From contig OZ249451.1 of NCBI GenBank assembly GCA_965235115.1, positions 12,028,001 through 12,092,000 of the forward strand: DNA of 64,000 nucleotides, given 5' to 3'. Of the stretch, positions 2,741-54,891 are shown piece after piece. Each line of letters opens with the position of its first letter. Position 1 is the stretch's first letter. The translations under genes and the position numbers were made by a program. The DNA is from Laetmonice hystrix. Its lineage: Eukaryota. The notes under the pieces were generated by a model. That model searched no databases and was not told the DNA's origin. It was given only the letters and a program-made list of their open reading frames with translations.

Positions 2741-3452
2741 CTAAAGTCGCGTGCTCACGTCAATGTCACTGTAGTAGAGGTCACCTCGCCGAGGGTTCCG
2801 TTTTTCACCCAGTTCTACGACATTCTCGTGAGAACTGACCGGTCTGATGTCGACGGTGCTGGTCTGGCTGGGAGGCAGGCGTCCCTCGTTATAATATTGC
2901 ATGTTTAGATCAGGTTGACTGGCGTGCTCGTCCTTAATCTCAATCTCCGTGATGGACTCCCCACGCGGGTGGACGTATTTGACCCCAGCGTCGTCAAGTT
3001 CCCCGATGTAGGCAGACGACGAACTGCTCACTGACGTAACGTCCGATCGGTCGAGGGCAGGGACGCCCTCTGACGACCCGGATGTGGCGGTAACCGTGGC
3101 GAAGTCTGGGTAATCCTTCTCCTTGACGTCATACCCCGGCAGACCCGTCAAGTGGTAGTCGTCTGCTAGCTTTGAATTTGGCGACACGACGCTGACGGGT
3201 GTGTGTTTGTCGTGTATGAAGGCGTTGTTAGGGACGACCGCTACATACGGGGCCTTCTCAAGGCCGTTACGTTTGGTTTCGACGAAAGGGGGCGCTGCCG
3301 GCTTGATGTGACCTGATTTTAGTTTGTCACCGTCACCGCCGGAGTAAGCGAAGTCGGCGTCGGATACGAAGCCTGCTCTGTTCGTGTAACCGTTCTCCTG
3401 CCGGCTCGGCTGCTGCAGTATCTGCTCTTTCTTCTTTCGATACATCTTGCAA
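2741..3452 (-). CDS. Exon 13: cytoplasmic tail (CKMYRKKK...DLYYSDIDVSTRL*)
   Basis: Acceptor ttatcag|T at 3453/3452, phase 2 matching the TM exon; basic stop-transfer RKKK; TAG at 2741-2743; matches the 234-aa ORF. Confidence 0.9.
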
Positions 3453-6400
3453 CTGATAACAAAACATTAAAAAATAGATAAGACATAAATAAGTGTAACG
3501 CTGGCACAGGTTAGAATGGTAAAATAGTCCGCGCGGAGTCGCTTCCTTTTCCTAAAATTATGTAGGCCTACTTTAATAGAGAGCCGTGTACTACGTGACT
3601 GCTGTTCTTACACGTGTGAGCGATAATATGTGTAATCATTGGTTCCGTGAAGCTAAATGAGAGGTCACTTTAGCGTCAAAGTTTATATGTACTTGTGATA
3701 CTATAGGGCGAAACTTTGTAGGCCCCTGTAGTTGCTCCATAGGTTGTCAACATCGCACTTCACAACGAACAATTAGGGTTAGTATTTTCACCTGTGACCG
3801 ACAGAACTTAGAAGTGCTTCTCTGGTTATTGGCACGTTGACTATGAAACCTTGGATGACGGCCAGGGTGGTTATCGGTCGAGTATAAAGAACGCTACTCG
3901 GGTAAACTCAACGCCCTCTACAGGTCATCGAGGGAACGAAAGGGAGAGAACTGAGGCAGAGCGTTATTTCCTCATGGTGACTTTCCAAGAAAGTCCTAGG
4001 ATTAGGTTTGAGGCTTGGGAATGTGTGACGTCATATTGTTAGCTCCTCCCACCAGTGTCACGGGGGTGTTACCATGGACACAGGTGGAGTGGAGAGAACA
4101 GAACGGTTTAGTATATAATCACAGAGAGCATGGTGACTCGCTGTGTGGTTATGCCAGATAAACTTGAAGTAAACACTTTTGTTTCCTACCATTTCCAGAT
4201 GGTGACTAGGACAATGACGAGGAACAGCAGTACAGCCACCGCAATGCCAACGTACATAGGAATCAAATCCGCTAGGGTTCAAGGAAAAAAAGTAAATTAA
4301 TCACCTGTTAACCCCCATAAATATTATCAATATAAAACTTTAGGCAACATCCTATTACCTATTCATCGAACTAGCTACATGGGCGGATAGGGGAGGAGTA
4401 AGGACCTTAAGGCGTCGATGGTTTTTTTGTTTGTTTGTTTGTAATTGATCACATTGGGCCCCCTCTCTAAGATTCTAGATCTACCCCGATCTATAGACGA
4501 CACGTGTCTAAGATATGGCCGTATCAGGTGGGACATTCATTCAGAAGAAACACTGCATGAAGTTACGTGTGATACAATTTTAAAGACTTATATTTTAAAT
4601 CTGAGCAGAGTGTCATATAATGGGGCAGGATTGGAGACCAGAGTCTATACTTACGGTCCTCCTTCACCCCCGAGGTCGTTTCCGTCACTGTGTTATCTGT
4701 CGGCAAAGGAAGCAGAACAGAATGTTTACACTAAGATCATAGAATCATTCAAATAGTTGAAACATTAATATCAGATCTCTGAAACTGTAAATCGCTTAAG
4801 CAGCAATTATACACTGTACATTATTTGTGGACTTGGACTGGGACTGCTATACGTAACACGCCATACAAATGTGTGAAGAAAAAGCAGCCGGTAGACCTCA
4901 GTCTTCACCGAAACATGTTTTCATGAATCCCCGATAAGAAAACATCGAGGGGACCAGACATATACTTAAGTCTGGTCTTATACAGATACAGACACGCATG
5001 CAAGTATCACACAGTAAGACTTGGCCAACCGTCAGCAAAATGTACAATGACTTTCCTATCTGAGGACAGAGGAAGAACTTTGGGGGAACTTGTAAAACAA
5101 GATCTATTGAAGACTATTCTTTACCATATGTCCTCACCATGATCTGTAATTACATGTACCTCCTGGTCTTTGACACAAAGAACGATTAACTTGAATGACT
5201 CCGGGGCAATTCCCCATCCGACCAGGACAAAGCCTGAGGTATATGTGATTCAGGCTTCCCTCCTTATTACGTTCATACCTTTAGGTGACACCTAAATGGG
5301 TTAAAAGATGATCTCTGCTTACCGTCTGGGGCAGCGTTCATGGTTAGTCTCTATCCAGATTCCGAATCATCTGCAGAACGCTGGACTGGTGACACATATT
5401 CACGCAAGACGGTGGGGGAGGGTGGAGGGAAGGCAAGAGGGAATTCAATGCAAATCTAGGTCGGTCTTTCATGACTAGCTCAAGGCAGGTGGTTTTTCTA
5501 CCCTCTTATATTCCATGAAAGGTGGGTGGTGTGATGGAGCGGATGTTTTATACTAATTGACGGGCCTAACTCATCTATCATCTAACAGATCAAACGTGGT
5601 ACTTGGCACCCCATGAATTACAGTCAAACCGTACCATCAACATCTGCTCAGGCCCCCTCCCACTTCTGAAAGTATTTACCCCCGTCCTAGGACAAAACTC
5701 GCCCAATTCCTGACAAACTTCACGGCCTCCCCCGGGCGCATCCAGAAATATGCGACCCTACAGGTCCAACCCCAGAACATCATTTTGTTTGTCACAGTTA
5801 TCTATGTGAGAGGATGGTCAGTTTGTGTCATGCGTCTTGACTAGCTACCCGTCACGTTTCAGTGAACACATACGGCTTTCCAGGCGAGGGGAGGGTTGGT
5901 AAAAATGTCACAACCAAATCACATGGTTCACAAAACTCATACATACGTGGAAATCACGCGAGAATTCCTGGGAATTATTGACCTTTAACGTCGATATCCT
6001 AACACCCTCCCGCGGTCACCTCAAGCTTGGCGGAATCGAGGCTTGCCCGGGTTTAACATTGCCAGCTTTAAAAACAACCTGTTGTGCATCTTTTTCTTTT
6101 GGCAGCAACGAAACCTTCATTGTTTACCCTTGAAGATACATTGAGAATATAATATCAAAACGTAGATTTAGATCGGGCGTTGCTCACGCAGTGATCTGTT
6201 TTCTAATCCAGAACCATTCTGGCAGCTTTCGGCGGTTTTCATTCGACAATGTTCGGATATTTCCGTCGGCCGGAGCGCGTGATTCATATGATTGCCGCTT
6301 GGTGGCCAGAGTGGACCGGTTTGTTAGAACACTACTCACCAGGTGGCGCGCCAGGCGTGGACTTGGTGGGGACGCCGGGAGATTCCGGGCCGCCACCGAC

Positions 6401-9400: not shown

Positions 9401-12400
9401 GCAATTGACAGACAAACAGACAACACACATAGGCTTCGTATCCTCGTTATGAGACCCAATCACTTCTGGTGAAAGCGATCACCGCAAAGTTAAAGCCAAA
9501 GTTACCAGAAGAAGGTTGACACAAAGCATATCGGGGTCATATTCAGGGTTTGCTTCTGACTTGGACTAATTATTTAATTTGTCCAACGGTCTAGGCAGAC
9601 GCATGTGCTACAGACGCATCACAACAAATGTTTTAAAGAGATTTGGTTAACCAGATCCCAGAAGAGGGGGTAGGTGTGGGTTTGAGCAGGTAATTGGAGT
9701 CAATTAGTCACACGAATTTTGTAAACAAAGGGAGGAAGTTGGTAGATGGCAGTCTACCAACACACTCTGCAAGACGCCACTAGTGTCGCCACCTATCACC
9801 AAACACATGAACCTCCTGCGTCCTCACGTGTCTGACCTAGGTCTACGTAATACTGGTTTCGTGCGAACACACTGATTGGCTGTTTTAGACAAAACACTTG
9901 GACAAGACAATATAATACATTTATACGCCCATATATCCGTCCGCCCATACAGAGCTATCATATAAACGGACTTGGGGACTGGGATTCCTGGAATTCCATA
10001 TCAAAACTTTTAGATTTGGACTCAAGTTCGTCCCTGGTTGACCTTGAGGTCGGTGTCGAACTGTCGATCTTTTAGTCCTGGCGTGACAAGCGCATGCGTG
10101 TATGGTTCGCGCATATCGTCAAGGCAACACAAGGGGTCAACAACATACATGCATGCTAGAGCTGCCATTGCACGACGTCATCTCAACAGGAAACATCTAC
10201 TCAAACTCAGGCTAGGTAATAATTTGTGTGTAAACTTTGCTAGAAGAAATGAGGTCACCCATGTAGGAAATCTGGTGACTGCAACTGGGAGATAACTGGT
10301 TTACCCCTCCCCCCTCCCCAAATAAAATAAAATTACAAATACATAATAAAATAAATCATTCCTTCTTTTGTTCCTGCTTTTGTTCCTTTTGTTCCTGCTG
10401 CCCAAACAGACATATGTTTTTCATATGCTACATCTTGTGTTGCTTTAAGACTTTACATATGAAAACATTGGTACGATCCAAGCACAAGGGGCATTAAGCA
10501 AGAAATTGGAGGTCCAGAAAATCGCAAGTAGAAGACTGAGGGGATGGGGTTGAGACGTCGCGCGCCTTCCAATTCTTACATATCCTAGCTACGTATACTG
10601 TAACCAACTTGCTAACTTTGCTTTAAATCCTTCATTTTGTAATCGCGCATTTAGCTGCAGCCTGATACTGATAGAAATACCCTATAGGTTTAAACTCACC
10701 TGGAAGTGCTGCTGGTGACGTGGTTGGACTTGAAGGTAGGGGACCTAATGTAGGTTGTGTCGGTACAAGCGCTGTATCAAAGAATGAAGGAAAGAACACA
10801 TTATAGATATATGCATGTGACGTATGGGGCACCGGGTGAACCTGACTGTGCGTAGTGCACATAGTAGTCGCTAGGGGGCCCACCTTTACGTGAAACCTTT
10901 GCATCCTGTTAATTTAATCCAACGTTAAATTTAAATATTTCCGTTGTTTTTGTTTATCACTAATCTCTTTTTTAACTGCCACTTTTCCAGTTTCTACTTG
11001 AATATCCCTATTTGCGGCCATTGCGACATGATTAGGCCTACTATTTTTGTGCAAAGATAATATTGGGATTCTCGAGTGCATTTGAGGATTTAGGGTTCAA
11101 GGTATCAGTGTATACTAATTTGATCACTAAATTAATTTTCTTCTAATCAATGCTCGGTTGCTGTCTGCCAGGGAGTCTAAATACTAAGGAATTTAAAAGT
11201 ATATATTAAACAGCTAATTATAAATGTTCATACGGTCATATGTAAACATTTCTCAGACCACAATTATTATGTTTAAGATGGTAAGTACCAAAGGCAAGTT
11301 GTTTTTTATTTGTGTGTGTGGGGCATTACAGTCGCACTGTCGTGAATTTAAGGAATGCATGCAAAATAAGCTACACCTGTAACAAAGTTACAAGGTGTCA
11401 AGTTACTCTGTGATAAGGTAAACAACCCTGCTTCTGATGTGACTTAGTGAACAGCCATGCTTCTATGACAAGGTGCACAGCCCTCTAGCCCAACAACCAC
11501 CTCTTCTGTGACAAGGTGCACAACCCCCTAGCCCAACCACCTCTTCTGTGACAAGGTGCACAACCCCCTAGCCCAACCACCTCTTCTGTGACAAGGTGCA
11601 CAACCCCCTAGCCCAAAAACCTCTTCTGTGACAAGGTGCACAACCCCCTAGCCCAACCACCTCTTCTGTGACAAGGTGCACAACCCCCTAGCCCAACCAC
11701 CTCTTCTGTGACAAGGTGCACAACCCCCTAGCCCAACCACCTCTTCTGTGACAAGGTGCACAACTCCCTAGCCCAACTACCTCTTCTGTGACAAGGTGCA
11801 CAACCCCCTAGCCCAACCACCTCTTCTGTGACAAGGTGCACAACCCCCTAGCCCAACCACCTCTTCTGTGACAAGGTGCACAACTCCCTAGCCCAACTAC
11901 CTCTTCTGTGACAAGGTGCACAACCCCCTAGCCCAACCACCTCTTCTGTGACAAGGTGCACAACCCCCTAGCCCAACCACCTCTTCTGTGACAAGGTGCA
12001 CACCCCCCTAGCCCAACCACCTCTTCTGTGACAAGGTGCACAACCCCCTAGCCCAACCACCTCTTCCGTGACAAGGTGCACAACCCCATACCCCAAAAAC
12101 CTCTTCAAAAGTGGTGAAATAATAGTCATGACGTCAAAGATGCATGGTTTCGCATTTTACTTTTAACCCACTACTCTTTGTGAAGAGTTATTCACATACG
12201 ATGGGCTATTATTATAGTAGTCAAGAAGCGGCAACATGACATTTGCATTTAGGTCGATGTAGTCGGACGTTTAGGTGAATCACCGTATCTCTATCCAGTG
12301 GCGGTATTAGACTATTGTTAGTACTGTACATTAGAAGACTTTGCCATACGTAGTATACCCTATAGATTAACTAGAGGAGATTTGGGTGTCCTTAAGACCT

Positions 12401-15400
12401 CGGCAATGGACATCTTCATGTAATCTCTTTGGATATATAGAGGGAGCACCAGTCAATAATACCGTGAAACGGATGAACTTTTCTTGGATCGCAAATATTT
12501 TCAATCTCCTGGTAGTACTGACTGGGCCATTGGAGTTTCATGAAAAGCCAGAGATAGAACATGATGGGGCGACTCAGTACCAATGAGGGGGTACTTTGTC
12601 CTACGAGGTGGGGTATTCTGCTCTAATTTATGCACTATTTAGACTGTCTAACATTATAACTAGACATCAAGTTTCGGCATATCTAAACTACGTTATAGTG
12701 TTGATATAGCCGTCAGATCATTAGATATCGCAGGGGTACTATAGGTTTACGCAATGCTAACCCAGTGTCTATTATGACGTCAGAGCGTTCGTGGGCAGTT
12801 AGAAAGCATGACGGTCAGTGATAATACTGTCATTTTGTTGTCAGGTAGGGGCACTACGATCATACAGGAGGACTAAACCATGACACTGTCATTTACTTAA
12901 ATTATTTACCTCTGATATATTCTGTAATATTATACTGAATGAAGTAATTAGTTTGGTAGGGATTTTACAAGTTGATGCCGTGTATCATACTTGCCTGTTG
13001 GCGACGGTGGGAAGTATTCTACGTGTACATAGAATAAGACATTATTTTTCTTAAATATAAATGAGAATGGCTTAATGTCCACATCATGCCTGAGTAGACC
13101 GATTAATCCAATAATCGTACAAAGTACATGGAGGCTAACATAGGTAATTTTTATGATTGGCTTCTCAACCTTAATTGTATGGTTCAGTATGAAGCATAAT
13201 TAACGTCATTTACATTAATAAAATGTAGCATTTAAAACTTGATGTACAAACCTTTACTCTAGGTAACCCCTAACAACCTTGCTATGCGTTGACGTCGACT
13301 TCCGGTTTTAAGTATAAACCGGAAGTGGTCGACGGTTTCGACCTTGACCCCCTTGACCTCCCTTTGAATTGACACTTACTGGTGTTGTATGTTTCCGTAT
13401 ATTTTATTGTGTATGCCTACATATACAGTACGTGCGAAATATCGAGCTACATTATGGTATCTAAATAGGGCCTACCGGTAACCGGAAACCCAGCACTGTC
13501 AAAAGCTACGTTAAGAATGTGAAGAAAACGTGAATCCGATTCACACCATCCAACCAACTATTCTGTTCGGAAGAGGAGTTGGGGCGACTGAGAACAAAAT
13601 ACTCACGTCTTTCACAAATAAAACTCTGGTGTTCACTGCAGCCGACGTCGCTCCATTCGTAGGTAACTGAGACCTTGTAACTCATGACGACACACTTCTC
13701 TCCCTCATTGGATGGAACCCCTCCGGCCCAGGGGGCAAACCGCAGCCGGTCACCTGTCGGAAAACCAAACCATTCACATGTTATCATTTTACGTCCAAGG
13801 CCCTCGTTGGAGTCACCCATGATTAGGGTATGAATCTTTTTTCTGAAAATATTAGGGGTTAGTGACAAGTTCTTGGCTGCGAGCACATCCATTTTATAGG
13901 CTGTCCTCGTACGTGCAGATACATATGAAACAAATGAAAGAAGAAGAAGAACTTTGTTGTCTTTTTGACACGAAAGCTTTTCTTCAAACGTTAACACCAT
14001 ATCAGAAGAAGAAATGTTAAGGTGAATGGTTGGCAAGTTCAACTCTAATACCCCGCCTTGACCTTGCTCATGTTTGAGCTCACCGTTAGCCCAGGCCCAG
14101 TTGACCTTGGTTGCTCCAAGCCAGAATATGCCCTGAACGCATGGCAGAACTTCCCGGATAGCGTCGTGACTCGCCTCCGATGTAATCTCCAGTAATCGAG
14201 CACCCTTGGCGAAACATCCGTTACGGGCTCCGAACCACGTGTCCTCGGCGTACTGATCGTAAGATATACAAGCCTCTGCCGTACTCGTCAAACCTTTCAA
14301 CTGACATTCGCTCTTATCATAATCTAGATAAATAAAAGCAAACGATTCCATCATCGTAACTATGAATGACGTAACTGAGTTCAATAACACCCCGAGGGAG
14401 CGTCTCACAACCATCGTTATATCTTGTAGGTTAAAATCCCAAATAAACATGGTTTTAATGCTACATTCTGATACACAACTCTTTTCTATATTTTAACGTG
14501 TTTTTCAGCCACTTAAAATGGAATACATATTTCTGAAAAGAAACATTGAAATACATAGTGTGCTAACAATGTTAGGGGACCATTATGATTAGCTTGCAGC
14601 GACCTCTGACGACTCTCAAAGAAACTATATGTAACGTTCGCCAACATGTCTATTTGATATCGTAACCCTACACGTGTCGGTATCCATGGAGACAGTTACC
14701 ATACATGCAGATGTACTTGAATTTCCTGGCGCACCTCTCGCTCTGCCACCGCCAACTCTCGCTGTCACTCTCGCACTTGTAAACCATGCACTCCATGTCA
14801 TCAATCCCGCCGCTGCCGCCAGAGGGCGACCCAAAGGCCCACCCGCCGGACCAGATACCTGGGGTCAGAGGTCAAGATGTAAGCTGACAGAACATGAAAA
14901 CTGTTGCAATGGGTATTTAATATAAACTTATGGGAAGAATAAAAAAATTCTTATATAAAATTCACGGCTCCAAAGTGGAGTGAGCCTGTGCAACGCTTCG
15001 TATCATGTTAAGTATATGGCGGGTTGCGTTCCTTTTCGGTTACCTGCTATGTAAAGCCGGGTACACGAAAGGTGATATAGATACACTAATTATAAAAGAA
15101 ACCCCCAACAGTTGTGAAATAATTACCGTCCACCAAGAAGACCTGGTTAGAGCTTGTGCCTCCACAGTTCTGGTCGAAGTCTCCCAGACATGGCTGGGTG
15201 CATTCTGAACTGAATCCATACGACCCGAACGAATTGTCACAGTTACAGAGGATGCCGGACTGTGGCAAAACAAGGAAAATACATTGATGTAGATTATCTC
15301 ATATATTTCTAAACGCATAGATTACATATTGTAGTATTTCTAAGAGCCATTTTAAGAGTTAGGATACATTTAAAGTCGAAATAGGCGCTTATACGAGTAG

Positions 15401-18400
15401 GTCTGTATAGGCCTCTGTGACACCATGTGATCAATTTTCTTCATTTATGTTGTTAAAAAAACGGCAGAACGCTTTGTTCTTGAGCCTCAGGCCGGGCTCA
15501 AGTCAGTAAGCCTATAGCTGTGACGTCACGTGACGTCACAAGACCACTAATGCCGACTGGTGGTGCTCCCTGTGTATGTTCGACTGTACCATCGGCCGAT
15601 TCTCTAGTTCAGGTCAAGGAGGACTCTCCTGGTCGGGACTAGCAGAGCCCCCTTTGTGCTGAACTGGGAAAAAGAACCGGGCTAACTGTATCACAGCGAC
15701 ATCTACCGGAAGTCGCCTGACTCACCTGGACGCCGGCGTAACGGTAGCCGGCTCGGCGACACCCTTCGATACATTTCTGCGGTGTGACATCATTAATCTG
15801 AACTTGGAAATTCAGGTCCTTGTCGACCGGGTCGTCCTGGAAACAGCCCTGAGAGGAGAGGTTCACCCGCCCTTAAAGAGGTCAAAGTAATTGCATTACA
15901 ACATGATGTTTGATAATAAGGCCAGACCCTGGCGCTGTCGTGCCACCCGATTAACGTCATTCTTCGGTGGCGGAGTTACTTAAGGGCCTAACTTCCTACT
16001 CCCGGTTGCTGCCTTTACTGAAACTGTTAAAAGGACACACCCCTTACCAAGAGTTACTGAAACTGTTAAAGGGACACACCCCTTACCAAGAGTTACTGAA
16101 ACTGTTAAAGGGACACACCCCTTACCAAGAGTTACTGAAACTGTTAAAGGGACACACCCCTTACCAAGAGTTACTGATTTTGAAAAAGGGCATCAAGCTG
16201 CTACACTGGTTTCCGAATTTACCTTCCCATGAGGTCTATACTAACGCACCTTCAGTGACTTACATACAGGATTATTTACAGGCCTACCCATCCCTTACTT
16301 TAAGTGACCTACCTGTCACCCAGTTCCAATCACCAACCACTCCTCGTAAACCAATCCACGTATCCAAGGCCGAGTTGTCATTCAATAGCTTGTAAAGCAT
16401 CTCCTGAGAAACAATAAAAGACAAAAATAACCTTCACAGCGCCTCGAAACCATCCGGGAATTATAAATCCCGGATGCCCGTGTTGTAATTTAATGAAACC
16501 ACAAAGTATTAACCGATGCAATGCCGATCCGATTCTACGCACTCAAACCAGCCACTCTCACCCACGCCATGTGTGGGAGAATGACAGCTGTAGTTCAAAT
16601 AATGACCGCTAGATGGCAGTACAGTGTAGACGAGGCGATACGGCAACACAAACCTTTAATACATATCTAGAAACCGTAATATGTAGGCTAATTGAACATA
16701 TGAGCCATGAGGATTAGAAAAACACTTCTAAATTCTGATTTATTACCTGGAGACTTTTATCTTGAATGACCGCTAGTTGACCTTGATATACTTCCTGACA
16801 GTATTGGTTGGCCTCGTCCCACGTTTTTCTACAGTTACAGAGCAGGTATCCCATCCCATTCCTCGTCTTCTCTTGACATCGGTCACACGTCTGGCCTGTA
16901 AAAGTCACATCATTAGTAGAGTATGAGTTCATTATACTAATTCGTTAACGTGTAAGTTCATTTTGTGCTTAGGACCACTGTACACATATCCAAAAACACC
17001 ATTACGACATATCTCTATCTATCTGTCTGTGTCTGTCTGCCTGTCTGTCTGTCTGTCTGTCTCATTTTGAGGGCCACACAGCCTACAGCGGCCCCTGGCA
17101 ACTTTCAGAGAAACTATGTTAAACTGTCAGACAGGACGAAATATTCATTTCATCTGGTTGAAGTAAAAGAGATTGTTTCCCGAAGACTGAGCCAACCTTT
17201 TGGCGCTCGACCATCTATCTGTCCAATCTATCTATCATTGTCTTGTTATAAGATGATTGTAAATCTTGGTCGTCCTCTTCCAGGTCTAGAATTGTCACCA
17301 GCCAGACAATTAAGCTTGGCTCTACCTTTTAGACTTTCAGAGGAAAACCAAGAAGTACACATCTAATTCATGCTGGAAAAAGTCGTGTTTTTTGAGGCGC
17401 TTGTCGATATTTCTTCTTTAGAACGAAGCAGCGCTGAAGCAAAAAGGGGGATGGCGAAGTGACGTCAATTTTCTAGCAACTTTTTATCGTCTATGAATTA
17501 CCAGCAGTCCTTGAAACCGCTTTTAGAAAACATTTTTCTTTCTGCATGCAGACAGTTGGCTGAAGAATGCGCCAGACCCTCGGCTGTGGATTTGTCTGAA
17601 TGTTGAAAATAAAATAATGTTTTATGCTGAAGAAAACTTTTGATATCCCCTTATAGACGTATTTATATGTTAACGGGCGAGTCGGTCAAAGTCGACAAAA
17701 GGAACACTTTTCTGTGGTATTAGACAAATTTTATACACCTCGGCTACTTTATTAACATCTGGCCAGGCTAAGGTGAATGCGAATGACAGGCAGGCCTTCA
17801 GATCAACCTTTTCATCTCAGGAATATGATAAGAAAACTGTACAGTCTCATTATGAGTGAGATGATCTTCAGCGTCGGTAGCTATCTACCTATGTGTTTTT
17901 TAAGTCCACCCTGCAATATACATGTCCAGTTCACGCCCTGATAACATAGAATATGCCATTCTAAGAGCATTTCTTTCAGGAAGTACTCTGTTTAGAGGGA
18001 GTCTATTAGAGAAGGTTGGCAGATCGGAACCTGACTAATGTTTTCATGGATGTAATTTTGACAGGGATGCGATGAAATATGTGACTTTTAGTAACGTCGT
18101 CCTTTTGAAAAGAACCTTCGACTGTGTGCTCTCATTTCATAGTGTGAGAACTACATACATTTACCAATAAAACGGGTCAAATTAAGAGGCCTTATACCGT
18201 AATCCCTGAAACGCTACAACTGTGACGCGTTCAGTAAGGCGAACTGGTGCGAAACGTTCTGCGCGAGAGTTTTGGTTCGGCTGAAACGTTTCCATGACGC
18301 CAACCGAAGAGGACGCGGCGAGAGCTATCCTCCTCGAGGAGTTTATGGTGGCTTCAGTCTCTGACAAAATGTGTAAAACCATCCCCATCCTACACCTGTG

Positions 18401-36400: not shown

Positions 36401-39400
36401 CCGACATGAGATGCGTCTTTAATATTCCGACAGTACCTCACAGAGACTGCAGTCCACGGATCGAGTAGCGCTGAAACCATCGTTTGAACCCGCTGCCATT
36501 GGATGTTTACATTGACGTCATAGTGACGTCGTTTTCCTGAGCCAATCGCAGCTGCTATCTCAAATCGAGCACAACGTTGCTGTCTGCCTGACAAACTAGC
36601 CCACCTGCTGCATTCGCTAAATGTAGGGTTGTATGATGAGGTCCATGACTGAAGAAATACTTCTGGTTTTTAAAGGGTGAGGGAGATGGTTCAGTTTGAT
36701 TCACAGCTAGGTTGTTCACAGATTCCACTGCTCACGGAAACAACTTGTAAACTACTCTCGCTATGCTGGCGACAATGTAACAAACATGCCTTGCGGAGAA
36801 GAAGAAGAAGAAGAAGAAGAAGAAGAAGAATACATCAATACAACCAAGGATAATACAGACGAAAACATGCCTAACTATAAGGCGAACAAAGAGGGAAACG
36901 CGAAGAACCATTTAAGCTGGCCTTCTGTCAAATCTCCGAAACTGTGATGGCTTCTGCAGCACTGGTATCATCCTCATTATCGTCGTAACAAGCCACGGGA
37001 TACCAGAAAACACCCTCTCAATGTATAGCCGTATAGGGTATGTTATAGCAGCTCTAACTGCAACCCCTATTTCAGGATAATTATCGTGGCTACCGTCCAA
37101 CTCAAACTAGGGTAAACATTTAACAACACAAGATTGAATCTGCATAACCTTTAAACAGTGTTGTTTTTCCAGGTAGAAAGAAAATGGCAAAAGCCCACAA
37201 GATATCTGGGACAGATCCAAAAGATGATCTAGTTTCGTGTCTGTGCTTGGAATCTTCATCTCGACGGCTAGTAATTACTGTCGGAACGTTCGAGCATTCT
37301 CTCACGACATGACAAAGATATTTACTGACGTTCAGTTCCAAGTGAGCATTACTGGTGAACTACTGCCAGAAGGAGATTAAGAAAAAGGATTGTTCAGACA
37401 TGGACTATCCTACGTGACCTTGAAAATTACCCCGTACACAGATCACGATCAGGATCTGCTACAAGAGTTGGATGACCACGTGCTTGGTATTGTACATTGT
37501 TTTTCTCTCAAGGAACCTTTGCTGTGGTTCTTCTTAATGTATGTATGTAAAGAATCTGTTCGTAGCCATCAACAGGCAGCCAGAGAAAGCATAAATGTTG
37601 ATGAGGTATCTTGGACTCCAGGAGGTCTTCCAAAAAAGGTCCGCTCATTGTTGTGTATAATGGTGGGATGGTGTGGAAATAAACGAGAGTATATACCATT
37701 TCAAGAAAAATATTTAACTTGACATGATTGTCAATAGGGTGTTGAGTTTTACCCGAGGGTTAAAGGATAATGGATGGTTTGGTAGGCTACCAGCACATTC
37801 AGCAGGCTGTTCAACCCCCCACCGGGTTAAATCAAGTTTATACTAGCTCTAACTGAACACCGACAATTAGGATCATATTTCCTTTGACTGGTAATCCGTT
37901 ATAACACGTTCCGTTTCCTATATGACGGGGTGGACACAGACTGGCAGTAAATCAAATCGTGAGGTCATCCACTGACAGGTGGCATCCGGGACGACAAAAC
38001 AACAGGGCTGTGTGCGGGAAGGAACAAGGAACATCTCTACGTAGACTTATAGCTATAAAGATATAGATAAAGATTAACCTATAGATAAAGATAATGCTTC
38101 TAGATAACTGGACAGTCGGATAGATAAAGGAACAGAATCAGGTAGGCAAACATACGTTCAGATGCAGATGATAAAAGAACAAGACTATAGTCATAAAGAG
38201 CAATACATAAACAAACACTATAGTCATGAAGAGCAATAAATAAACAGGTAAAGAAAAGTCTAAAATTATGCATCATAATTTCAAAAGTTATAGAAACAGG
38301 TCTAGTCAGTTAGAAGCGGACGAACTAGTACACGCATAATATAATAAGTTTGACAAAGAGCAGAATGATATATGTGTTAGACATTGTGTAATATTCTCTA
38401 GACTGCGCCAGGCCTGAGGGGCTGAATGGATAAAACTGTCGAGCTGAGATAAAGCACGGATTCAATCGTTGATTTAGAACAAAAAGAGAGCTCTACTGGT
38501 TATGGCAGAGCTTGCGGCGGGACTGGACCAGCACAGCGAGCTACCTCATTATATCATCAATAACATGAACGGTATGGCATACCAAGCGAGCCAAGCTGGT
38601 CCTGCTCGAAATCCACGTCTTGGAATCTTTAACTGTAACTTAGGGCATATCGCAAACCGGGGGCGTTAAGACGGGGATGCACAGCAGAAAAATGGTCCTG
38701 AGAAGATCTAAAAGANNNNNNNNNNNNNNNNNNNNNNNNNNNNNNNNNNNNNNNNNNNNNNNNNNNNNNNNNNNNNNNNNNNNNNNNNNNNNNNNNNNNN
38801 NNNNNNNNNNNNNNNNNNNNNNNNNNNNNNNNNNNNNNNNNNNNNNNNNNNNNNNNNNNNNNNNNNNNNNNNNNNNNNNNNNNNNNNNNNNNNNNNNNNN
38901 NNNNNNNNNNNNNNNNNNNNNNNNNNNNNNNCATCATAAATGAGGCGAAACATGACGTTCATTATACCGCTTCCGGTCGACACATGTCATTTATCCTTTA
39001 TTATCGCCCACTGTCTCTCCCATCCCTGACTCGGCCCAGAGTTTGCCGTATTCGTGAAGACTGAACTCTACGACCGCGGTATTCTGACATCATAACAGAC
39101 ACACCTGCTGGATGATCCATCCCATAATGTGACCAAGGTCACGTGGGGCAGCGAGATTTACCAAACGTAAAGTAATGTCAATGCCAAATCACCCCCACTC
39201 AATGCCACGAGTTTGTGAACGATTTTCCCGACTATGGCGCGGGAGCTTATATTGGCACAGGCCCTCAAGGGGACGATTTCGTATCGTTTCCACTAAGGCA
39301 TGCTGTGTATAATTTAAACTCGTGCTATTTTTTGCCGGTATTTCGTGATCGGAGTAAGAACATCAGGCGAAGACCAATGGGGTATGGATGGGTATGTGCT

Positions 39401-51400: not shown

Positions 51401-52982
51401 CAGTCTTCCTGTCCTGTCATTATTTCCCTACCCTCACGCCCTAAGTTCCCACCTGTGTGAGCATACACATCTGCCTGCCTGAACACAGTTGCATGTTCAT
51501 CTTCTCTCTTCCTCTCTCTACATGTTTTGCACACAATGTTTTACACGCAAGTTTTTACACACAAGTTTTACGTGCATGTTTTACACGCAAGGTTTTACAC
51601 CTAAGTTTTACCTGCATGTTATGACACTCTCCTGTGTATCATCAGTAAAATATCGCGTGTTTACGGCCTCTCCGCGAGAGTTTCAAACGGCATGTTTTAC
51701 AACGGTCTTACGTCTATTATGGAGGATTTCGGGAAGGCGGAAGTCGGGGATAGGGCTTCTGTTCACGTTCAGATCACAGCGCCACCTCTAGGCCATCGCC
51801 TTAACTAACCACGCTCTATTTCAACTGTCCCAGTAAACTTTCAGCCAGCCACTGTTCGCTAACCTATCATCTTTTATTTTAACTCTTAATTATTTCACGG
51901 CCTGCAGACAAATAGTTGTCTGATCATATTTGACCGTGGGGGTAGCCTGCAGGGCCCGGTCGTCACATAAAACCACATGCCATACTCATTTCACTTTTTT
52001 TGGGTCCCAGCTTGCCCTAGTATTGGCTTGTTTTCAGGAATGTGCAGCAAATATGGAGTAACTCAGCTATTGGTGCCATGTACCCGCGCTACGACCGACC
52101 CACAATAAATGTGGGCATGGGTATGGATGTTGAACAAACCTTTGTCTAGCTAAAATTCGAAAATGTAAACAAACGCTGTTTATATTTAACATTGGGAATC
52201 CATAATGTCTGGAACACGATAGACGTCAATATTTACCCATAGGATAATACAGGTTTACCCCCTGACATCGACGTCTCTATAATAATAATAAATGTATGTA
52301 TGTCACAAGTAAATGTCATCCGTGAAATTGTGGGGGGAAAGTATGTTGTTCTATAAAAATATGTAATAAAAAATTGACCGATCTTGATTAAAACTTTAGC
52401 CAAATCTTTCCCCTTTGCTCCTGACAATTTGTATAAAGTGGAAGGTCATCTGTATTACAGCTACTACGACAGAAAGATCGGTAAACTAATAAGTTTTTTT
52501 AGATTTACCAAAAGGATTGTGACCCTTCAATCTTGGGATCTTCGGATTAGATGGGGTTTGTTATTTTTATCAGTGTGGCGGCAGTAACTCCTCAACCTTC
52601 GCACTCATTGCTTGTGCCATCCTCCATGTGGTCCTAGTGATGTACGGCATGCCGAAAATCTGTACGATCTCTAACACATAATCTTGATCTCCCTCCCACG
52701 CTGACTTATTGTGGAGCAGGACAGACACAGAGTTTATGTCGGTCTTGAGGAGTGGGTGGCTAGTATATATAGTCATGCTCCTCTCTCTCTCGTCATCTGT
52801 CCCTCTCTCTNNNNNNNNNNNNNNNNNNNNNNNNNNNNNNNNNNNNNNNNNNNNNNNNNNNNNNNNNNNNNNNNNNNNNNNNNNNNNNNNNNNNNNNNNN
52901 NNNNNNNNNNNNNNNNNNNNNNNNNNNNNNNNNNNNNNNNNNNNNNNNNNNNNNNNNNNNNNNNNNNNNNNNNNCTCCCCCT

Positions 52983-53018
<36 letters not shown>

Positions 53019-54891
53019 CTCTCTCTCTCAGTAGATATAGTACCTCCCCCATGTTAATCTCTCTGATCATAACTTGTTAAGAGAACCTTTAGGACTGAGT
53101 TGGGCGGTCTGTCTGTCGGGACACAGGACCTGTTTACCCTGTGAAAGGTCACGGTTCCTTGCTGCTTACCCTTGCGTGACCTGTGCGGGGTAAGAGGTCA
53201 CACCCTCTGTCTTGACACAATGGACCGGCTAAGATGAGTAAATGTAATACGACCATGATCCCTGAACATCAACCCGGTCAATGTACACTCTGGTCGGACC
53301 GGTCAGTGTGTACACACTCCGGTCCGACCGGTCAGTGTGAACACACTCTGGTCGGAACGGTCAGTGGACCCGACACACCCTGGACTGTGGGTGATGAAAG
53401 GGTTGGTGGCATGCACCCCTCCCACTGTGACCCTTACAGGTAAAGGTAAAAGGCTATACATGTACACACTCTAGGGAGGGTCCTATTGCCCACCGGGAAA
53501 CGGTGCCATGTATTAACCTACTTATATATGCACGGATATATATACCATAATCAACATAACATTCCCACGAAGGCGTTATGGTAACGGTCTGGCCCCGGTT
53601 TTTAGTTCGCAAACTAGGACCAGGCCTATTCTTGACATTTGTTTTATGGCTTCTGATTGACTGGTCAACTGAAATCAGCCAATTGGAAACCAGAAAACAA
53701 ATTTCCAGTCTAGGTCTGGGGACCGAGGGTAGGGATTAGGATTAAGTTTTGGGTCAGGATTAATGAAAGATTTTTAGTTCATCTGTCGCGAACTGTGTGG
53801 AGTTGTTACCATAGTCTGTACCAACACTCCTGTCTCTATTCAGGGAGTTGTGTATAGTTTCACTGGGCACGAATCCATGACTTGAGCTTCCTCGTTGCCA
53901 ACATGACATAAAATGTTTGAATTGAAGTTCACTTTATAAATTATTTATGTAATTATGTTAGCCGGTCGAGGCGTTCCGTTTAGAATCGACGTCATCCATG
54001 CGAGGGAGTGTATACCGCTGTGTTGAATTTGAATCTGACAAAGTCGAAAAAAGCGACTTTGTTTGAACTACGTTATGCTACAGGTAGAGGGCCTGGTGTC
54101 ACGTTGTGTACACTGGCACAGATCGTACTGGCTGTTACATAAAAGTAGAAGCAGTGGAAAGTAGGATACGACAACTCTTGATCAAGAAAGAAAAACACAG
54201 CAGGACAAGACATCTGTTTCTCTTCCTTCAACTAGTCCTTACTCATCCAATCACACACATAATACGCACACACAACACGCACAGGGCACGCACACACAGG
54301 ACACGCCCGGTCCCTGATTACAGGTTTGTCACACTGGCGACTCCTAGCGCTCCCGTCAGAACGAATCAAATCGATCTATTCCATACATAAATGTCACGTG
54401 ATCGCTCATTAATCAATTTGACCTTGTCTGGACAGCGTGACGTGCGACCTTCACAGGTGACCTTGGGGTCAAGAATCCCTCACTTGCCTTTTTAGGGTTG
54501 ACGGGAAAAGGGCTATTTCACCCCACGCGTCAATGATTGTCCATAGTACGGTGTACAGTGAGCAACCAGTGGTATCCGCGTTTACATCCCCCCCCTACCA
54601 TGGTACCGTCCCACGAAACGGAAGGTAGGATTATGGCTAGCAACCAGGGATATGGATAGAGATCATGATGGGTTGGGAGTTGGAATAGTAATAAATTTTT
54701 AATTATCATCCCAATATGTGGATATATCCCCATGGAGGACGTACTGTGTACAGCAGGGAAGGGGTGGTGGGGATACAGTAAGGCAGAATGTTGACACGTT
54801 TAAAGGTAAACAGTTGGCTGAAGGTTGACCCACCTATGACAGTCTGCAGTAGGGCGCAGACCAGCAGCAACGCTCGCAGTGTATTCATCAT
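2741..54891 (-). CDS. Whole gene model: type I transmembrane C-type lectin/WSC receptor (SP - CTLD split by WSC - CTLD2 - S/T/P stalk - TM - cytoplasmic tail), 13 coding exons, 803 aa
   Basis: Exons 54891-54834, 16895-16747, 16403-16313, 15871-15726, 15259-15127, 14858-14700, 14323-14084, 13753-13607, 10771-10700, 9102-8818, 6477-6340, 4271-4190, 3452-2741. All introns are GT-AG with matching phases; total 2412 nt is divisible by 3 with no internal stop. Extra small exons may have been missed. Confidence 0.8.
4190..4271 (-). CDS. Exon 12: transmembrane helix (DLIPMYVGIAVAVLLFLVIVLVTIWKC)
   Basis: Acceptor ccctag|CG, donor TG|gtagga; 82 nt, phase 1 to 2; about 21 hydrophobic residues in a frame absent from the ORF track. 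Confidence 0.9.
6340..6477 (-). CDS. Exon 11: Pro/Gly/Thr-rich stalk (ADKTTLIPDASRTTLEPGVPPIDPGVGGGPESPGVPTKSTPGAPP)
   Basis: Acceptor tctctccag|GA, donor G|gtgagt; 138 nt, phase 1-1. Confidence 0.85.
6868..6965. repeat. About 33-bp tandem repeat, 3 copies
   Basis: Unit about ctttcccgggggttttattacaggctagagttct. Confidence 0.8.
8818..9102 (-). CDS. Exon 10: Thr/Ser-rich mucin-like stalk
   Basis: Acceptor tactcag|CA, probable donor A|gtgcgt (less certain); 285 nt, phase 1-1; poly-Thr/Ser inside ORF 8708-9175. Confidence 0.8.
10700..10771 (-). CDS. Exon 9: Pro/Thr-rich linker (LVPTQPTLGPLPSSPTTSPAALP)
   Basis: Acceptor ttctttgatacag|CG, donor CAG|gtgagt; 72 nt, phase 1-1. Confidence 0.85.
11468..12106. 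repeat. 40-bp minisatellite, about 16 copies (intron 8)
   Basis: Unit acaaggtgcacaaccccctagcccaaccacctcttctgtg, near-identical head-to-tail copies. Confidence 0.97.
13607..13753 (-). CDS. Exon 8: C-terminal half of CTLD2 (GDRLRFAPWAGGVPSNEGEKCVVM...WSDVGCSEHQSFICER)
   Basis: Acceptor ttttccgacag|GT, donor C|gtgagt; 147 nt; CTLD W-x-x-x-x-P, C, WxD-x-x-C and FICE motifs. Confidence 0.9.
14084..14323 (-). CDS. Exon 7: N-terminal half of CTLD2 (ECQL...ACISY...TWFGARNGCFAKGARLLEI...IFWLGATKVNWAWANG)
   Basis: Acceptor tttatctag|AT, donor G|gtgagc; 240 nt; WLG (WIGL-type) and WxWxxG motifs. Confidence 0.9.
14700..14858 (-). CDS. Exon 6: C-terminal half of CTLD1 (GIWSGGWAFGSPSGG...ECMVYKC...WRWQSERCARKFKYICM)
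   Basis: Acceptor ctgaccccag|GT, donor G|gtaact; 159 nt, phase 1-1; terminal C...W...C...YIC pattern. Confidence 0.85.
15127..15259 (-). CDS. Exon 5: second half of WSC domain (SGILCNCDNSFGSYGFSSECTQPCLGDFDQNCGGTSSNQVFLVD)
   Basis: Acceptor ttttgccacag|TCC, donor G|gtaatt; CxC...C..PC.G....CGG WSC signature. Confidence 0.9.
15726..15871 (-). CDS. Exon 4: first half of WSC domain (RVNLSSQGCFQDDPVDKDL...TPQKCIEGCRRAGYRYAGVQ)
   Basis: GCFxD and T...C...C...Y.YAG.Q WSC motifs; donor CAG|gtgagt. In-frame acceptor is ctctttaag|GG (phase 1); an alternative phase-0 CAG acceptor lies at 15849/15848. Confidence 0.85.
16015..16177. repeat. 39-bp minisatellite, about 4 copies (intron 3)
   Basis: Unit gagttactgaaactgttaaagggacacaccccttaccaa. 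Confidence 0.95.
16313..16403 (-). CDS. Exon 3: CTLD1 middle (EMLYKLLNDNSALDTWIGLRGVVGDWNWVTG)
   Basis: Acceptor ttgtttctcag|GAG, donor G|gtaggt; canonical WIGL and WxWxxG. Confidence 0.9.
16747..16895 (-). CDS. Exon 2: CTLD1 N-terminus (QTCDRCQEKTRNGMGYLLCNCRKTWDEANQYCQEVYQGQLAVIQDKSLQ)
   Basis: Acceptor cttttacag|GC, donor CAG|gtaata; TWxxAxxxC...GxLAxI CTLD helix-1 pattern. Confidence 0.9.
20794..20985. repeat. GC-rich 70-bp tandem repeat (2 full copies plus 1 partial)
   Basis: Unit gtcccacacggacctagccagggcaggacgggagggggtgacgggagcgccggccaggcggccgtgacct, starting at 20794, 20864 and about 20947. Confidence 0.85.
22153..22599 (-). mobile_element. Non-autonomous Mutator/MULE deletion derivative (about 447 bp) with about 95-bp TIRs
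   Basis: Left arm gtgcaggtcttaactgacaactgc...aaataatgat mirrors right arm atcattattt...gtcagtttagacctgcac; flanking direct repeat aacctgt; internal fragment ILLDATHKTTKCALPIFLVDVRSNAGYIPV resembles the first catalytic-Asp motif of MULE transposases. Confidence 0.75.
23542..23961 (-). repeat. 3' LTR (420 bp)
   Basis: Direct repeat of 30173-30592; begins 32 nt after the Gag-Pol stop codon. Confidence 0.97.
23994..29918 (-). CDS. BEL/Pao Gag-Pol polyprotein, 1974 aa, uninterrupted
   Basis: Gag core (LPTFSG...WPEF), Cys/His knuckles (CFRCFGNHRRSRC, CSVCGRHGHHPLLC), aspartic protease (FCDGGSNTTY), PRCGACRCGKC motif, RT (GDIRKMF, YVDD), Pao RNase H (SDGSDLAYG, ELNAA, DSET), integrase (GHGG...CQQC, DLFGP, SDPG, AVESLVK) and C-terminal W...Y...L...W tail. 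Confidence 0.97.
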   Translation of the reverse strand: MANVDELKWTRSKAKMAVTTAGVALGGGTSLTSGSPAYVSSVSDQNFIPVTSSASLTSDSPAYASVSADMNFIPVTSLASLTSDSPAHASVSAAQNFIPVTSLASLTSDSPAHASVSADQNFIPVTSLASLPAGSPACVSSVSAAQNFIHVPATSLVSVGPATAPVYAPYAGWSPINQPFISSPTHAAFSTGSAHSNIRLAKIALPTFSGLRKDWPEFRSVWRELAENTYENKKALAYELKRSVKGEASKRIKSVYITKPEAYDIMWRKLEDYYNDTSASVQAALDSLIQLKHVNAEDYRGLIALVDEVEAAYSQLEELGELNALTMRDVDHISSLLPMHLRLEWVRKQRTLTQGERMRPFVPFMTFLDDERAAVMRMAEMQHKRREDCNYRGRDEGRRGISAQQARGQSHHGEGSGQIKFHNCAFPAHRRDNMKHVTEECKEFQRMPRNEKYEALKQVGACFRCFGNHRRSRCPVNGACSVCGRHGHHPLLCMGRTGESDYHRTTAESHTAQSPTMALYPIQHAAVSGSGKSVTVFCDGGSNTTYITHQAADRLKVKKLQRLTLDVTTMGGVEKQYETCQYKIPLMTQAGRKVEIIAFGMDRITGPVSKLDLKVITRLFPDYEPEALQRRSTSVDILLGCDYFGLHPKHEIIRAGDHLSIMNGEFGICLQGAHPELKEDTCMDVNLAKTVHEVRLKSDSFNVQLRKFSHPEFERGWTSETFSVMKPARCASDAASFDDPVDTRDSKPSEDPNVSVQEAPMVIQSKPALSDEPGEDADKDQPSAAHTTQSVWRKGAEGRITDFILGEEIATETTPRCGACRCGKCPTVGQTYSFKEEQELKMIRDNLEYDDVNSRWITSYPWLVDPATLPDNYGAALGTLRNTEHKLQKDDQWAATYEAQIQDMLCRKVARKLSKEEMKSWKGPKFYISHLAVVNSHSQSTPVRIVFNSSQVYKGTSLNSCLAKGPDCYMNNLVGILLRWREEEIALVGDIRKMFNSIYLKPLEQHCHRFLWRGLDQSKEPEVFVMERVNMGDTPAPAISSEAVYQTASRFEDDSPAAADLLRKSSYVDDLIDSFKDKPEALKVARATENMLSKGGFQVKCWQFSGDAGSRKGGDLDGEAPEEESGRPFRDMLKGSNENLRVLGLGWKPQEDVIVYQVSLNFSKKRRGVHTETDLSKEDLPRCLPSVLTRRIVLEQVMRIYDPLGLVCPFTLWAKIYLRETWMKKLGWDDQLPDDLRDKWVNFFTSMFELEQLELKRCLHPRDAVGRPWLIILSDGSDLAYGFAAYIRWQLKDGSYWCRLIMAKCRIAPINRLSTPQMELNAALLSKRGRKVIELETRFEYEKVLQIVDSETVLNMINKTSTRFKVYEGVRVGEIQAATDGEMGCWAWMAGKHNTADWLTRGRLPRDLDEDSSWWKGPPILYQPAVEWGLKFGLQTRDPLPGEKKVYSSAATKASAALIDYSRVSDINKLIWVIARIKNIAKHKTFHGGRIVLVSPQDLRDAEDFIVSDLQASIKEELNKKDRKGRSGGRFGRLLPVQDGQGQWVVGTRLIQHNAMTLDSNLQKLLPPGHRGTRLFMERAHRSGHGGRDATLAKFRQQYWVPHGDKLAKSVKHQCQQCRLREAVFLKQEMAPLPEARLKPSPPFSKVMLDLFGPYRVRGEVQKRTSGKAYGVIFTDLVMRAVHIEVVFGYDTSSFLMALSRFACIRGWPDTIYSDPGSQLIGAERELREAWESLDRDRVVKKGSDSGLKWIFGPADSPWHQGAVESLVKSTKRAIHFAVHNQRLSVPELMTVCTEVANLLNERPIGVRSKDDSDVTIFTPNSLLLGRATAKNPGGWQLQENLHTRYGLVQAVTEQFWRKWTELYAPTLLIQQRWHTTHRNLCAGDVVIVADSNPLRGEYRLGLIKEVFPGADGKVRKVSLSYKQYKVGETTETYNGAKDVVVIRSVQRLALLVPWDYDQMDGDGIQESLELVAG
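29455..29830 (-). repeat. In-frame 75-bp (25-aa) tandem repeat, about 5 copies, at the Gag N-terminus
   Basis: Unit about SPAHASVSADQNFIPVTSLASLTSD repeated in the ORF translation; boundaries approximate. Confidence 0.9.
30161..30172 (-). promoter_or_regulatory. Primer-binding-site position, non-tRNA (GTTTAATTAACT), complementary to LTR-internal AGTTAATTAAAC
   Basis: Directly abuts the 5' LTR end; does not start with TGG; exact reverse complement of 30252-30263. Confidence 0.7.
30173..30592 (-). repeat. 5' LTR (420 bp)
   Basis: Identical to 23542-23961 by eye except one base (30275 T vs 23644 A on the + strand). Confidence 0.97.
38716..38931. other. Assembly gap (216 N)
   Basis: N run. Confidence 1.
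51264..51375. mobile_element. Hairpin MITE-like element (47-bp arms, 3 mismatches)
   Basis: gccttattcacaaagcacacgccagacttgcggactcacaaactatt ... aatagtttgcgagtccgcaagtcttgcgtgtcctttgtgaataaggc; termini reminiscent of PIF/Harbinger-type TIRs (inference). Confidence 0.7.
52811..52974. other. Assembly gap (164 N) inside a (CT)n microsatellite
   Basis: N run flanked by ctctct on both sides. Confidence 1.
53280..53370. repeat. About 29-bp tandem repeat, 3 copies, with partly palindromic units
   Basis: Unit about acactctggtcggaccggtcagtgtgtac. Confidence 0.7.
54834..54891 (-). CDS. Probable exon 1: signal peptide MMNTLRALLLVCALLQTVIG
   Basis: Typical signal peptide followed by phase-1 donor G|gtgggt; joins exon 2 in frame (VIG|QTCD). 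The link across about 38 kb is inferred. Confidence 0.7.

Follow-up and report, generated by a model that had tools for sequence, protein, structure and literature searches.

Gene and exon structure of the locus

The window analysed here is a 64,000-nucleotide stretch of the Laetmonice hystrix genome (GCA_965235115.1, contig OZ249451.1, positions 12,028,001 to 12,092,000), and its minus strand carries what is very probably a transcribed gene for a single-pass receptor, in which a complete WSC domain has been inserted by exon shuffling into the long-loop region of the first of two C-type lectin domains (CTLD1 and CTLD2). A sequence-only reading had proposed the core of this arrangement, with the first half of a CTLD (up to WIGL...WNWVTG) in exons 2-3, a complete WSC domain in exons 4-5 and the missing second half of the CTLD in exon 6, and had added that the insert might be switched by alternative splicing. 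We re-derived the exon boundaries from the sequence, and for the five exons of this core (exons A-E below) the coordinates, the phases and the canonical AG acceptors and GT donors all agreed with that reading. The features are listed in the order of the gene, with positions counted from the first letter of the window; contigs 24 and 25 are the transcript contigs described in the next section.

Exon 1, 54834..54891, minus strand: start codon and signal peptide (MMNTLRALLLVCALLQTVI-G) with a phase-1 donor; placed by the unique match of a loose end of contig 25, frame checked.
Exon A (exon 2), 16747..16895, minus strand: N-terminal part of CTLD1 with C0, C0' and alpha1 carrying C1; phase 1 in, phase 0 out; Pfam Lectin_C 2-25; spliced to exon B in contig 25.
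Exon B (exon 3), 16313..16403, minus strand: alpha2 and beta2 of CTLD1, WIGL...WNWVT-G; phase 0 in, phase-1 donor in the Gly codon; joined to exon C in contig 25.
Exon C (exon 4), 15726..15871, minus strand: first WSC exon with Cys 1-3; phase 1 in, phase 0 out after YAGVQ; Pfam WSC 2-45 (E 8.4e-8, 32.8 bits); in contigs 24 and 25.
Exon D (exon 5), 15127..15259, minus strand: second WSC exon with Cys 4-8 and the CGG motif; phase 0 in, phase 1 out; Pfam WSC 49-82; both junctions in contig 24.
Exon E (exon 6), 14700..14858, minus strand: second half of CTLD1 with the long-loop region, beta3-beta5 and C2-C4; phase 1 in and out; Pfam Lectin_C 78-106, in-house profile 60-95 and alignment; in contig 24.
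Exon F, 14084..14323, minus strand: first half of CTLD2, ending WAWAN-G, with a phase-1 donor homologous to that of exon B; Pfam Lectin_C 3-57; F-G junction in contig 24.
Exon G, 13607..13753, minus strand: second half of CTLD2 (VPS / WSD); Pfam Lectin_C 75-107; in contig 24.
Exon H, 10700..10771, minus strand: Ser/Thr/Pro-rich stalk; placed by a loose end of contig 24 beyond exon G, with a unique match at 10742-10771.
Putative transmembrane exon (YVGIAVAVLLFLVIVLVTIW), 4190..4271, minus strand: the strongest downstream hydrophobic segment, with good AG/GT sites in the frame that exon H requires.
Putative last coding exon, 2743..3452, minus strand: CC-KMYRKKK stop-transfer and a tyrosine-rich cytoplasmic tail of ~235 aa (YVAV, YSDI), stop codon at 2743; its open frame is continuous with the putative transmembrane exon.

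Along the gene the introns have phases 1/0/1/0/1/1, and the joined frame stays open for 662 codons. The predicted product is a type I membrane protein of ~662 aa made up of a signal peptide, CTLD1 with the nested WSC domain, CTLD2, the Ser/Thr/Pro stalk, a putative transmembrane segment and a putative tyrosine-rich tail, for which there was no Pfam family match. The total length is compatible with the 1115 bases of contig 24 that were left unplaced.

Transcript evidence

None of the runs is catalogued as RNA. Run X4 was made from the same sample as the genome runs, and its RNA-derived status was recognised solely from its spliced contigs. Two of these contigs match the window only as exons, joined at six GT-AG junctions with zero mismatches, and are therefore derived from cDNA. 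Contig 25 reads A-B-C and contig 24 reads C-D-E-F-G, with the junctions 16747>16403, 16313>15871, 15726>15259, 15127>14858, 14700>14323 and 14084>13753; beyond exon A, the end of contig 25 finds its unique window match at 54836-54865, in the signal-peptide exon that ends at 54834. The two junctions on which the proposed architecture depends, 16313>15871 into the WSC pair and 15127>14858 out of it, are thus both present, the WSC exons are included, and nothing is spliced between exons B and C or between exons D and E. Since these junctions leave no intervening exon, there is no hidden second-half or first-half CTLD exon on either side of the WSC domain, as the sequence-only reading had held.

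A probable single C-type lectin domain from two halves

The Pfam scan was run on the separate exon translations, with PF00059 (Lectin_C) and PF01822 (WSC) as the relevant families. The Lectin_C pieces of CTLD1 (2-25 in exon A and 78-106 in exon E of the window; 2-58 and 68-106 in the paralogue L019) divide the domain in the same way as the two exons of the uninterrupted CTLD2 (3-57 and 75-107). Being fragments, the single window pieces lie below the Pfam gathering score, and exon B (30 aa, WIGL...WNWVTG) is too short to score on its own; it aligns with the second part of the single-exon CTLD1 N-halves of the paralogues. This division was further examined with an in-house profile of 96 positions, built only from the uninterrupted CTLD2s of eight family members. 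On the spliced window protein the profile gave two complementary matches, 1-55 and 60-95 of 96, about 105 residues apart, and on seven nested units it likewise gave two pieces, 1-55 and ~56-96, separated by 95-115 residues. When the two phase-1-bounded WSC exons were deleted in silico, a single full-length CTLD match resulted (1-95 in the window, and alike in the seven nested units), so that the contiguous CTLD expected from their skipping is indeed restored.

Seven loci were spliced and aligned: the window copy, five of its paralogues and, from another species, locus L024. The core cysteines are distributed over both halves, with C1 (QYC) and WIGL in exons A/B and C2 (MEC), C3 (ERC) and C4 (YIC) in exon E, and C1-C4, WIGL and W.W are invariant in the seven aligned members; the disulphide bridges are predicted, the CTLD pattern being C1-C4 (alpha1 to beta5) and C2-C3. 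Solved CTLDs match the N-half only up to W.W (asialoglycoprotein receptor 1, residues 8-71 of a 128-residue carbohydrate-recognition domain; PLA2R) and the C-half from Y..W..GEPN to the end (conglutinin, residues 84-127 of a 128-residue carbohydrate-recognition domain; mannose-binding protein A). When exons A, B and E were co-folded as separate chains, three runs that shared at least 90% of contacts gave an interface score (ipSAE) of 0.56 with a partner confidence (pLDDT) of at least 58; the highest-scoring of three controls reached 0.02. The co-fold mark is reached by 51 of 78 solved complexes and by 2 of 108 mismatches in a calibration that differs from the present job, and scores of 0.60 or less count as weak and as unreliable unless the prior is high. 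Taken together, these results support exons A-B and exon E as complementary parts of one CTLD, and do so weakly at the level of the fold.

The halves might also pair otherwise, with the second half of CTLD1 and the first half of CTLD2 forming a circularly permuted CTLD and the two outer halves meeting around it, or with halves swapped between molecules. Snake-venom CTLD dimers swap the long loop between molecules. Because the ends of a CTLD lie together (PMC7618208), its topology would allow an N-half to follow a C-half, and CTLD1 and CTLD2 are split by an intron at the same site. Cysteine counts are odd in both domains of the window protein, nine in CTLD1 and seven in CTLD2. We nevertheless regard such a pairing as very improbable: nearest-neighbour pairing needs no permutation and is explained by the adjacent ends of the WSC domain, the WSC junction lengths fall within one residue at 6 of 7 loci, consistent with insertion as a tight hairpin, the boundary between exons E and F resembles an ordinary domain boundary, and the co-fold places exon E against A and B, the competing second half of CTLD2 not being among the partners. 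As for the extra cysteine of each CTLD (YKC in exon E, LPC in exon F), one may speculate that the two form an inter-domain or inter-chain bridge.

The nested WSC domain and its insertion site

Within the CTLD1 that exons A-B and E are taken to form, exons C and D encode a WSC domain that is complete. Exon C alone exceeds the gathering score of 27.8 bits, and exon D carries the match to the end of the 82-position model. Eight cysteines, including the C.C and CGG motifs, are invariant in the seven aligned family members and are spaced as in the solved domains of Kremen1 and Wsc1 (PMC5014086, PMC9024836), and at all 15 family loci the WSC exons are open and intact with eight Cys.

The WSC domain enters five residues after W.W; its exit lies 4-5 residues ahead of the conserved Trp found before the QPN/QPD position. 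In solved CTLDs, WIGL lies in beta2, EPN in the long loop and WND in beta4 (PMC7618208). Alignment to these landmarks supports an insertion inside the long-loop region, between WIGL/W.W..G, in beta2 and immediately after it, and the EPN/QPD position, which would set the insert beside the canonical sugar site; the entry point named in the sequence-only reading was the same. Solved WSC domains consist of an antiparallel sheet of topology beta1-beta5-beta3-beta4-beta2 packed on one helix (PMC5014086, PMC9024836), and since the first and last strands are neighbours the ends of the nested domain would lie close together, as an inserted domain needs. Across the seven spliced loci, W.W and the first WSC Cys are 11-12 residues apart, and CGG and the next conserved Trp 15-16 residues (once 19). 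These near-fixed junction lengths argue for a rigid, selected geometry.

The WSC pair could instead be a regulated cassette, such that the interrupted and the plain CTLD1 isoforms are both made, and several features would suit it: both flanking introns are phase 1, so that skipping keeps the frame, the skipped product scores as one full-length contiguous CTLD, and exon C has a weak acceptor (AAG). However, contigs 24 and 25 cross both cassette boundaries unbranched and show inclusion only, with no 16313>14858 joint among the X4 contigs, which may drop rare isoforms, and the WSC exons are open with eight Cys at all 15 loci. That these exons are kept open, with conserved cysteines and junction lengths, indicates that the included form is under selection. 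The splicing switch of the sequence-only reading was accordingly not borne out by the transcripts, and we consider it unlikely.

Family loci and other species

Exon C and a profile made from it served as queries against the 627-Mb genome, and examination of the flanks of the matches then gave 14 loci (the window and 13 further ones) with the same order of first WSC exon, second WSC exon, CTLD C-half, CTLD2 N-half and CTLD2 C-half. The CTLD1 N-half was found upstream at 9 of the 14 loci, in one case across a 9.7-kb intron. In the seven spliced units every boundary has a good splice site, the phases 1, 0, 1, 1 are conserved, and there are no stop codons. With its order of half-CTLD, two WSC exons and half-CTLD recurring at 13 further loci and at one locus of another species, the arrangement is far beyond chance.

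The arrangement extends to another species. In the unrelated assembly ERZ25073217, which has a GC content of 27% against 45% in the window genome and introns of several kb, the foreign locus L024 carries an N-half, both WSC exons, a C-half with QPD and then a second CTLD. A search with exon-level open reading frames returned eight ENA exon fragments. Among exon-level reading frames from ENA assemblies, P0117 has 73% identity to exon C and P0151-P0153 have 60-64%, and on some ENA contigs Lectin_C reading frames adjoin the WSC reading frame on the same strand in the gene tables.

Searches at the protein level were less informative. A homologue search with the stop-free CTLD2 frame (314 aa) gave no match, within a length window of 173-550 aa that would miss the 662-aa protein, and among the best 150 matches of a protein search with the exon-C profile all were multi-WSC proteins and none had CTLD halves; the one useful match was P0117, a reading frame at exon level from an ENA assembly. 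After alignment of exon C to the 585-aa scaffold protein A6, a profile search gave only bacterial caspases, by way of the caspase domain of the scaffold, and a look-up of exon C in the ESM Atlas gave generic WSC clusters only.

Probable origin by exon shuffling

The recipient and the donor type can both be recognised. In CTLD2 the Gly codon that follows W.W.. is still split by a phase-1 intron, which corresponds by homology to the exon B donor and is empty; in vertebrates, CTLD genes repeatedly have an intron at a position downstream of WIGL (PMC514892). The nested WSC cassette has phase 1 on both sides and an internal phase-0 intron, and is in this sense a class 1-1 module; a phase-0 intron likewise interrupts the Kremen WSC (PMC3927609).

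Tandem-WSC genes (G000 C10:10596326-10600081; C30:137145 and 935824-954819; L022) contain two-exon 1-0-1 repeat units, about a dozen at L022 in another genome and one at L018 in the window genome, and their WSC units have 38-50% identity to the nested WSC. A few tandem units are fused into one exon, for example at L011 and L033. L022 had been considered as a member of the nested family and was rejected, as it reads as a tandem-WSC gene. In a tree of nested and tandem WSC units, 13 of 24 inner branches stayed open and the nested label needed 2 changes, so that the tree is compatible with a single origin but resolves neither that origin nor the donor; the shared architecture and phases argue for one event.

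We therefore envisage a sequence of steps, all of them conditional. A two-exon phase 1-1 WSC cassette, likely of the kind used in the tandem-WSC genes of the same genomes, would have entered, by a single shuffling event, a phase-1 intron that a CTLD already possessed. With its ends close together, the WSC domain would loop out of the CTLD without breaking the fold and would be held rigidly next to the canonical sugar site. WSC and CTLD would then form a two-module glycan-recognition head on a stalk, and the tyrosine motifs of the tail could serve uptake or signalling. The domain-in-domain event by exon shuffling put forward in the sequence-only reading gains support from the complementary halves, the empty phase-1 intron of CTLD2 and the 1-0-1 tandem WSC units; at the levels of sequence, transcript and family this support is good, at that of the fold weak.

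Ligand motifs and predicted function

The calcium-site-2 motifs (EPN or QPD together with WND) are missing from both CTLDs of the window protein: in CTLD1, SPS takes the place of EPN/QPD and WQS that of WND, and CTLD2 has VPS and WSD. Among the paralogues (loci L012-L021 and L029-L032), CTLD1 usually carries galactose-type QPD/QPN, the complete WND motif occurring only at L019, the C21:9.69 Mb locus with QPN, and variants that contain Asp (FSD, MGD, WGD, YDND) at the others, and CTLD2 usually carries mannose-type EPN/EPD. As its calcium ligands are gone, the window CTLD1 is probably mainly a scaffold for the WSC domain, or binds without calcium. The whole protein probably functions as a receptor for glycans or patterns at the cell surface, with the WSC domain and a CTLD sugar site together in its head.

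The loss of these ligands, together with the extra cysteines, would also suit a different explanation, in which the CTLD1 halves of the window are decaying remnants that act as linkers and only the WSC domain and CTLD2 are functional. We find this hardly credible: neither the window copy nor any paralogue has lost C1-C4, WIGL, W.W or the positions of the hydrophobic core, QPD/QPN and WND-like motifs survive in most paralogues, and the two halves give significant complementary profile matches.

Several points weigh against the reading of the locus as a transcribed receptor gene with a WSC domain inserted in CTLD1. The transmembrane and tail exons were predicted from the sequence and not derived from RNA, and the RNA evidence itself comes from one run and one sample, as contigs only. 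The co-fold score of exons A, B and E lies in the weak range. Upstream of the WSC exons, the N-half was not found within ~15 kb at L013, L015 and L017, nor within ~5 kb at L030 and L032. Both CTLDs of the window protein are without calcium and sugar ligands, and solved WSC domains have no obvious ligand cavity (PMC9024836), so that carbohydrate binding by the nested WSC domain is an assumption.

Relation to known systems

Among known receptors, the mannose receptor family (MRC1, MRC2, PLA2R, DEC-205) resembles the window protein in its type I topology, its tandem CTLDs on a stalk and its tail tyrosine motifs, and PLA2R (E 7.5e-10), DEC-205 and MRC2 are the best solved-structure matches of the N-half. 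Unlike these receptors, the window protein lacks ricin-type and FNII domains, has no more than two CTLDs and carries a WSC domain inside CTLD1, and orthology is not claimed. In polycystin-1, a WSC and a C-type lectin domain stand side by side. Polycystin-1 and the sea-urchin REJ proteins are likewise animal surface proteins with both domains (PMC1934368, PMC9672506). Their domains are separate, like beads on a string, whereas those of the window protein are nested and accompanied by no PKD, REJ or 11-transmembrane parts.

The WSC domains of Kremen1/2 (PDB 5FWS) and the cysteine-rich domain of yeast Wsc1 (7PZ2) share with the nested WSC domain the eight Cys, the C.C and CGG spacing and the neighbouring beta1 and beta5, and Kremen in addition has a phase-0 intron at the equivalent place (PMC3927609). 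Neither of them is nested, since the Kremen WSC lies between Kringle and CUB domains and that of Wsc1 is N-terminal, and their ligands are protein or cell wall, with no defined sugar. The tandem-WSC genes share the two-exon 1-0-1 unit with the nested cassette but lack flanking CTLD halves. Bivalve-specific CTLD proteins with WSC domains (PMC10140915) are lophotrochozoan and uncharacterised, and are described as having unique architectures and a presumed immune role; the text of that paper is silent on nesting of the WSC domain, and its supplements make no mention of WSC.

Our literature search found no paper on a domain nested in a CTLD or on a WSC domain nested in anything, in a search that left architecture databases outside its scope and with full-length annotated relatives unreached by the protein searches; the family may already be present in databases, unremarked. 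Tentatively, and with confidence that falls somewhat short of even, we propose that the WSC-in-CTLD arrangement is an undescribed composite recognition module and the first documented insertion of a whole domain into the CTLD long-loop region, and that it has become fixed in a family of receptors in annelid-like worms and may extend more widely among lophotrochozoans. Rigidly positioned at the side of the calcium/sugar site, the WSC domain would broaden or redirect the specificity of that site, and skipping might give a plain CTLD in some members or conditions.

Textbook accounts of exon shuffling mostly concern modules placed side by side. The present case would be a class 1-1 module inside another domain with every step still legible, from the empty recipient intron in the sister domain and the donor-type cassette in tandem-WSC genes to a conserved multigene product. 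It would mean that the variable long-loop region of a CTLD can accept a whole folded domain next to the sugar site, and it suggests a route by which invertebrate pattern-recognition receptors, and perhaps engineered lectins, could arrive at combined specificities. Annotators will show two partial lectin domains around a WSC domain, and the family is therefore easily misread as broken gene models.

Repeats and neighbouring loci

Intron 1 (16896-54833) measures ~38 kb and contains two runs of N, 38716-38931 and 52811-52974, as well as a (TCTG)n microsatellite of ~13 copies at 17014-17062, about 120-170 bp upstream of exon A. The intron between exons B and C harbours a 39-bp unit repeated 4.2 times with 99% identity (16015-16177). 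On the gene strand each unit presents an acceptor-like TTTAACAG and, 15 bases on, a donor-like TTG/GTAAGG; no part of the repeat is spliced into the RNA contigs, and its DNA contig depth is 2-3x that of the flanks.

A paralogue of the nested family (L027 and L016, G000 C21:12003281-12016720) lies on the opposite strand, tail to tail with the window gene and ~14 kb past its 3' end, and further family members cluster at C21:13.41-13.53 Mb, 10.45-10.49 Mb and 3.75-3.85 Mb. At one of the loci (L015:6079-7593, G000 C21:13518078-13519592) a minisatellite of ~1.3 kb fills the intron before the CTLD2 first-half exon, and its open frame of LLHPLPLLV repeats is continuous with that exon, giving a spurious open reading frame of 505 codons.

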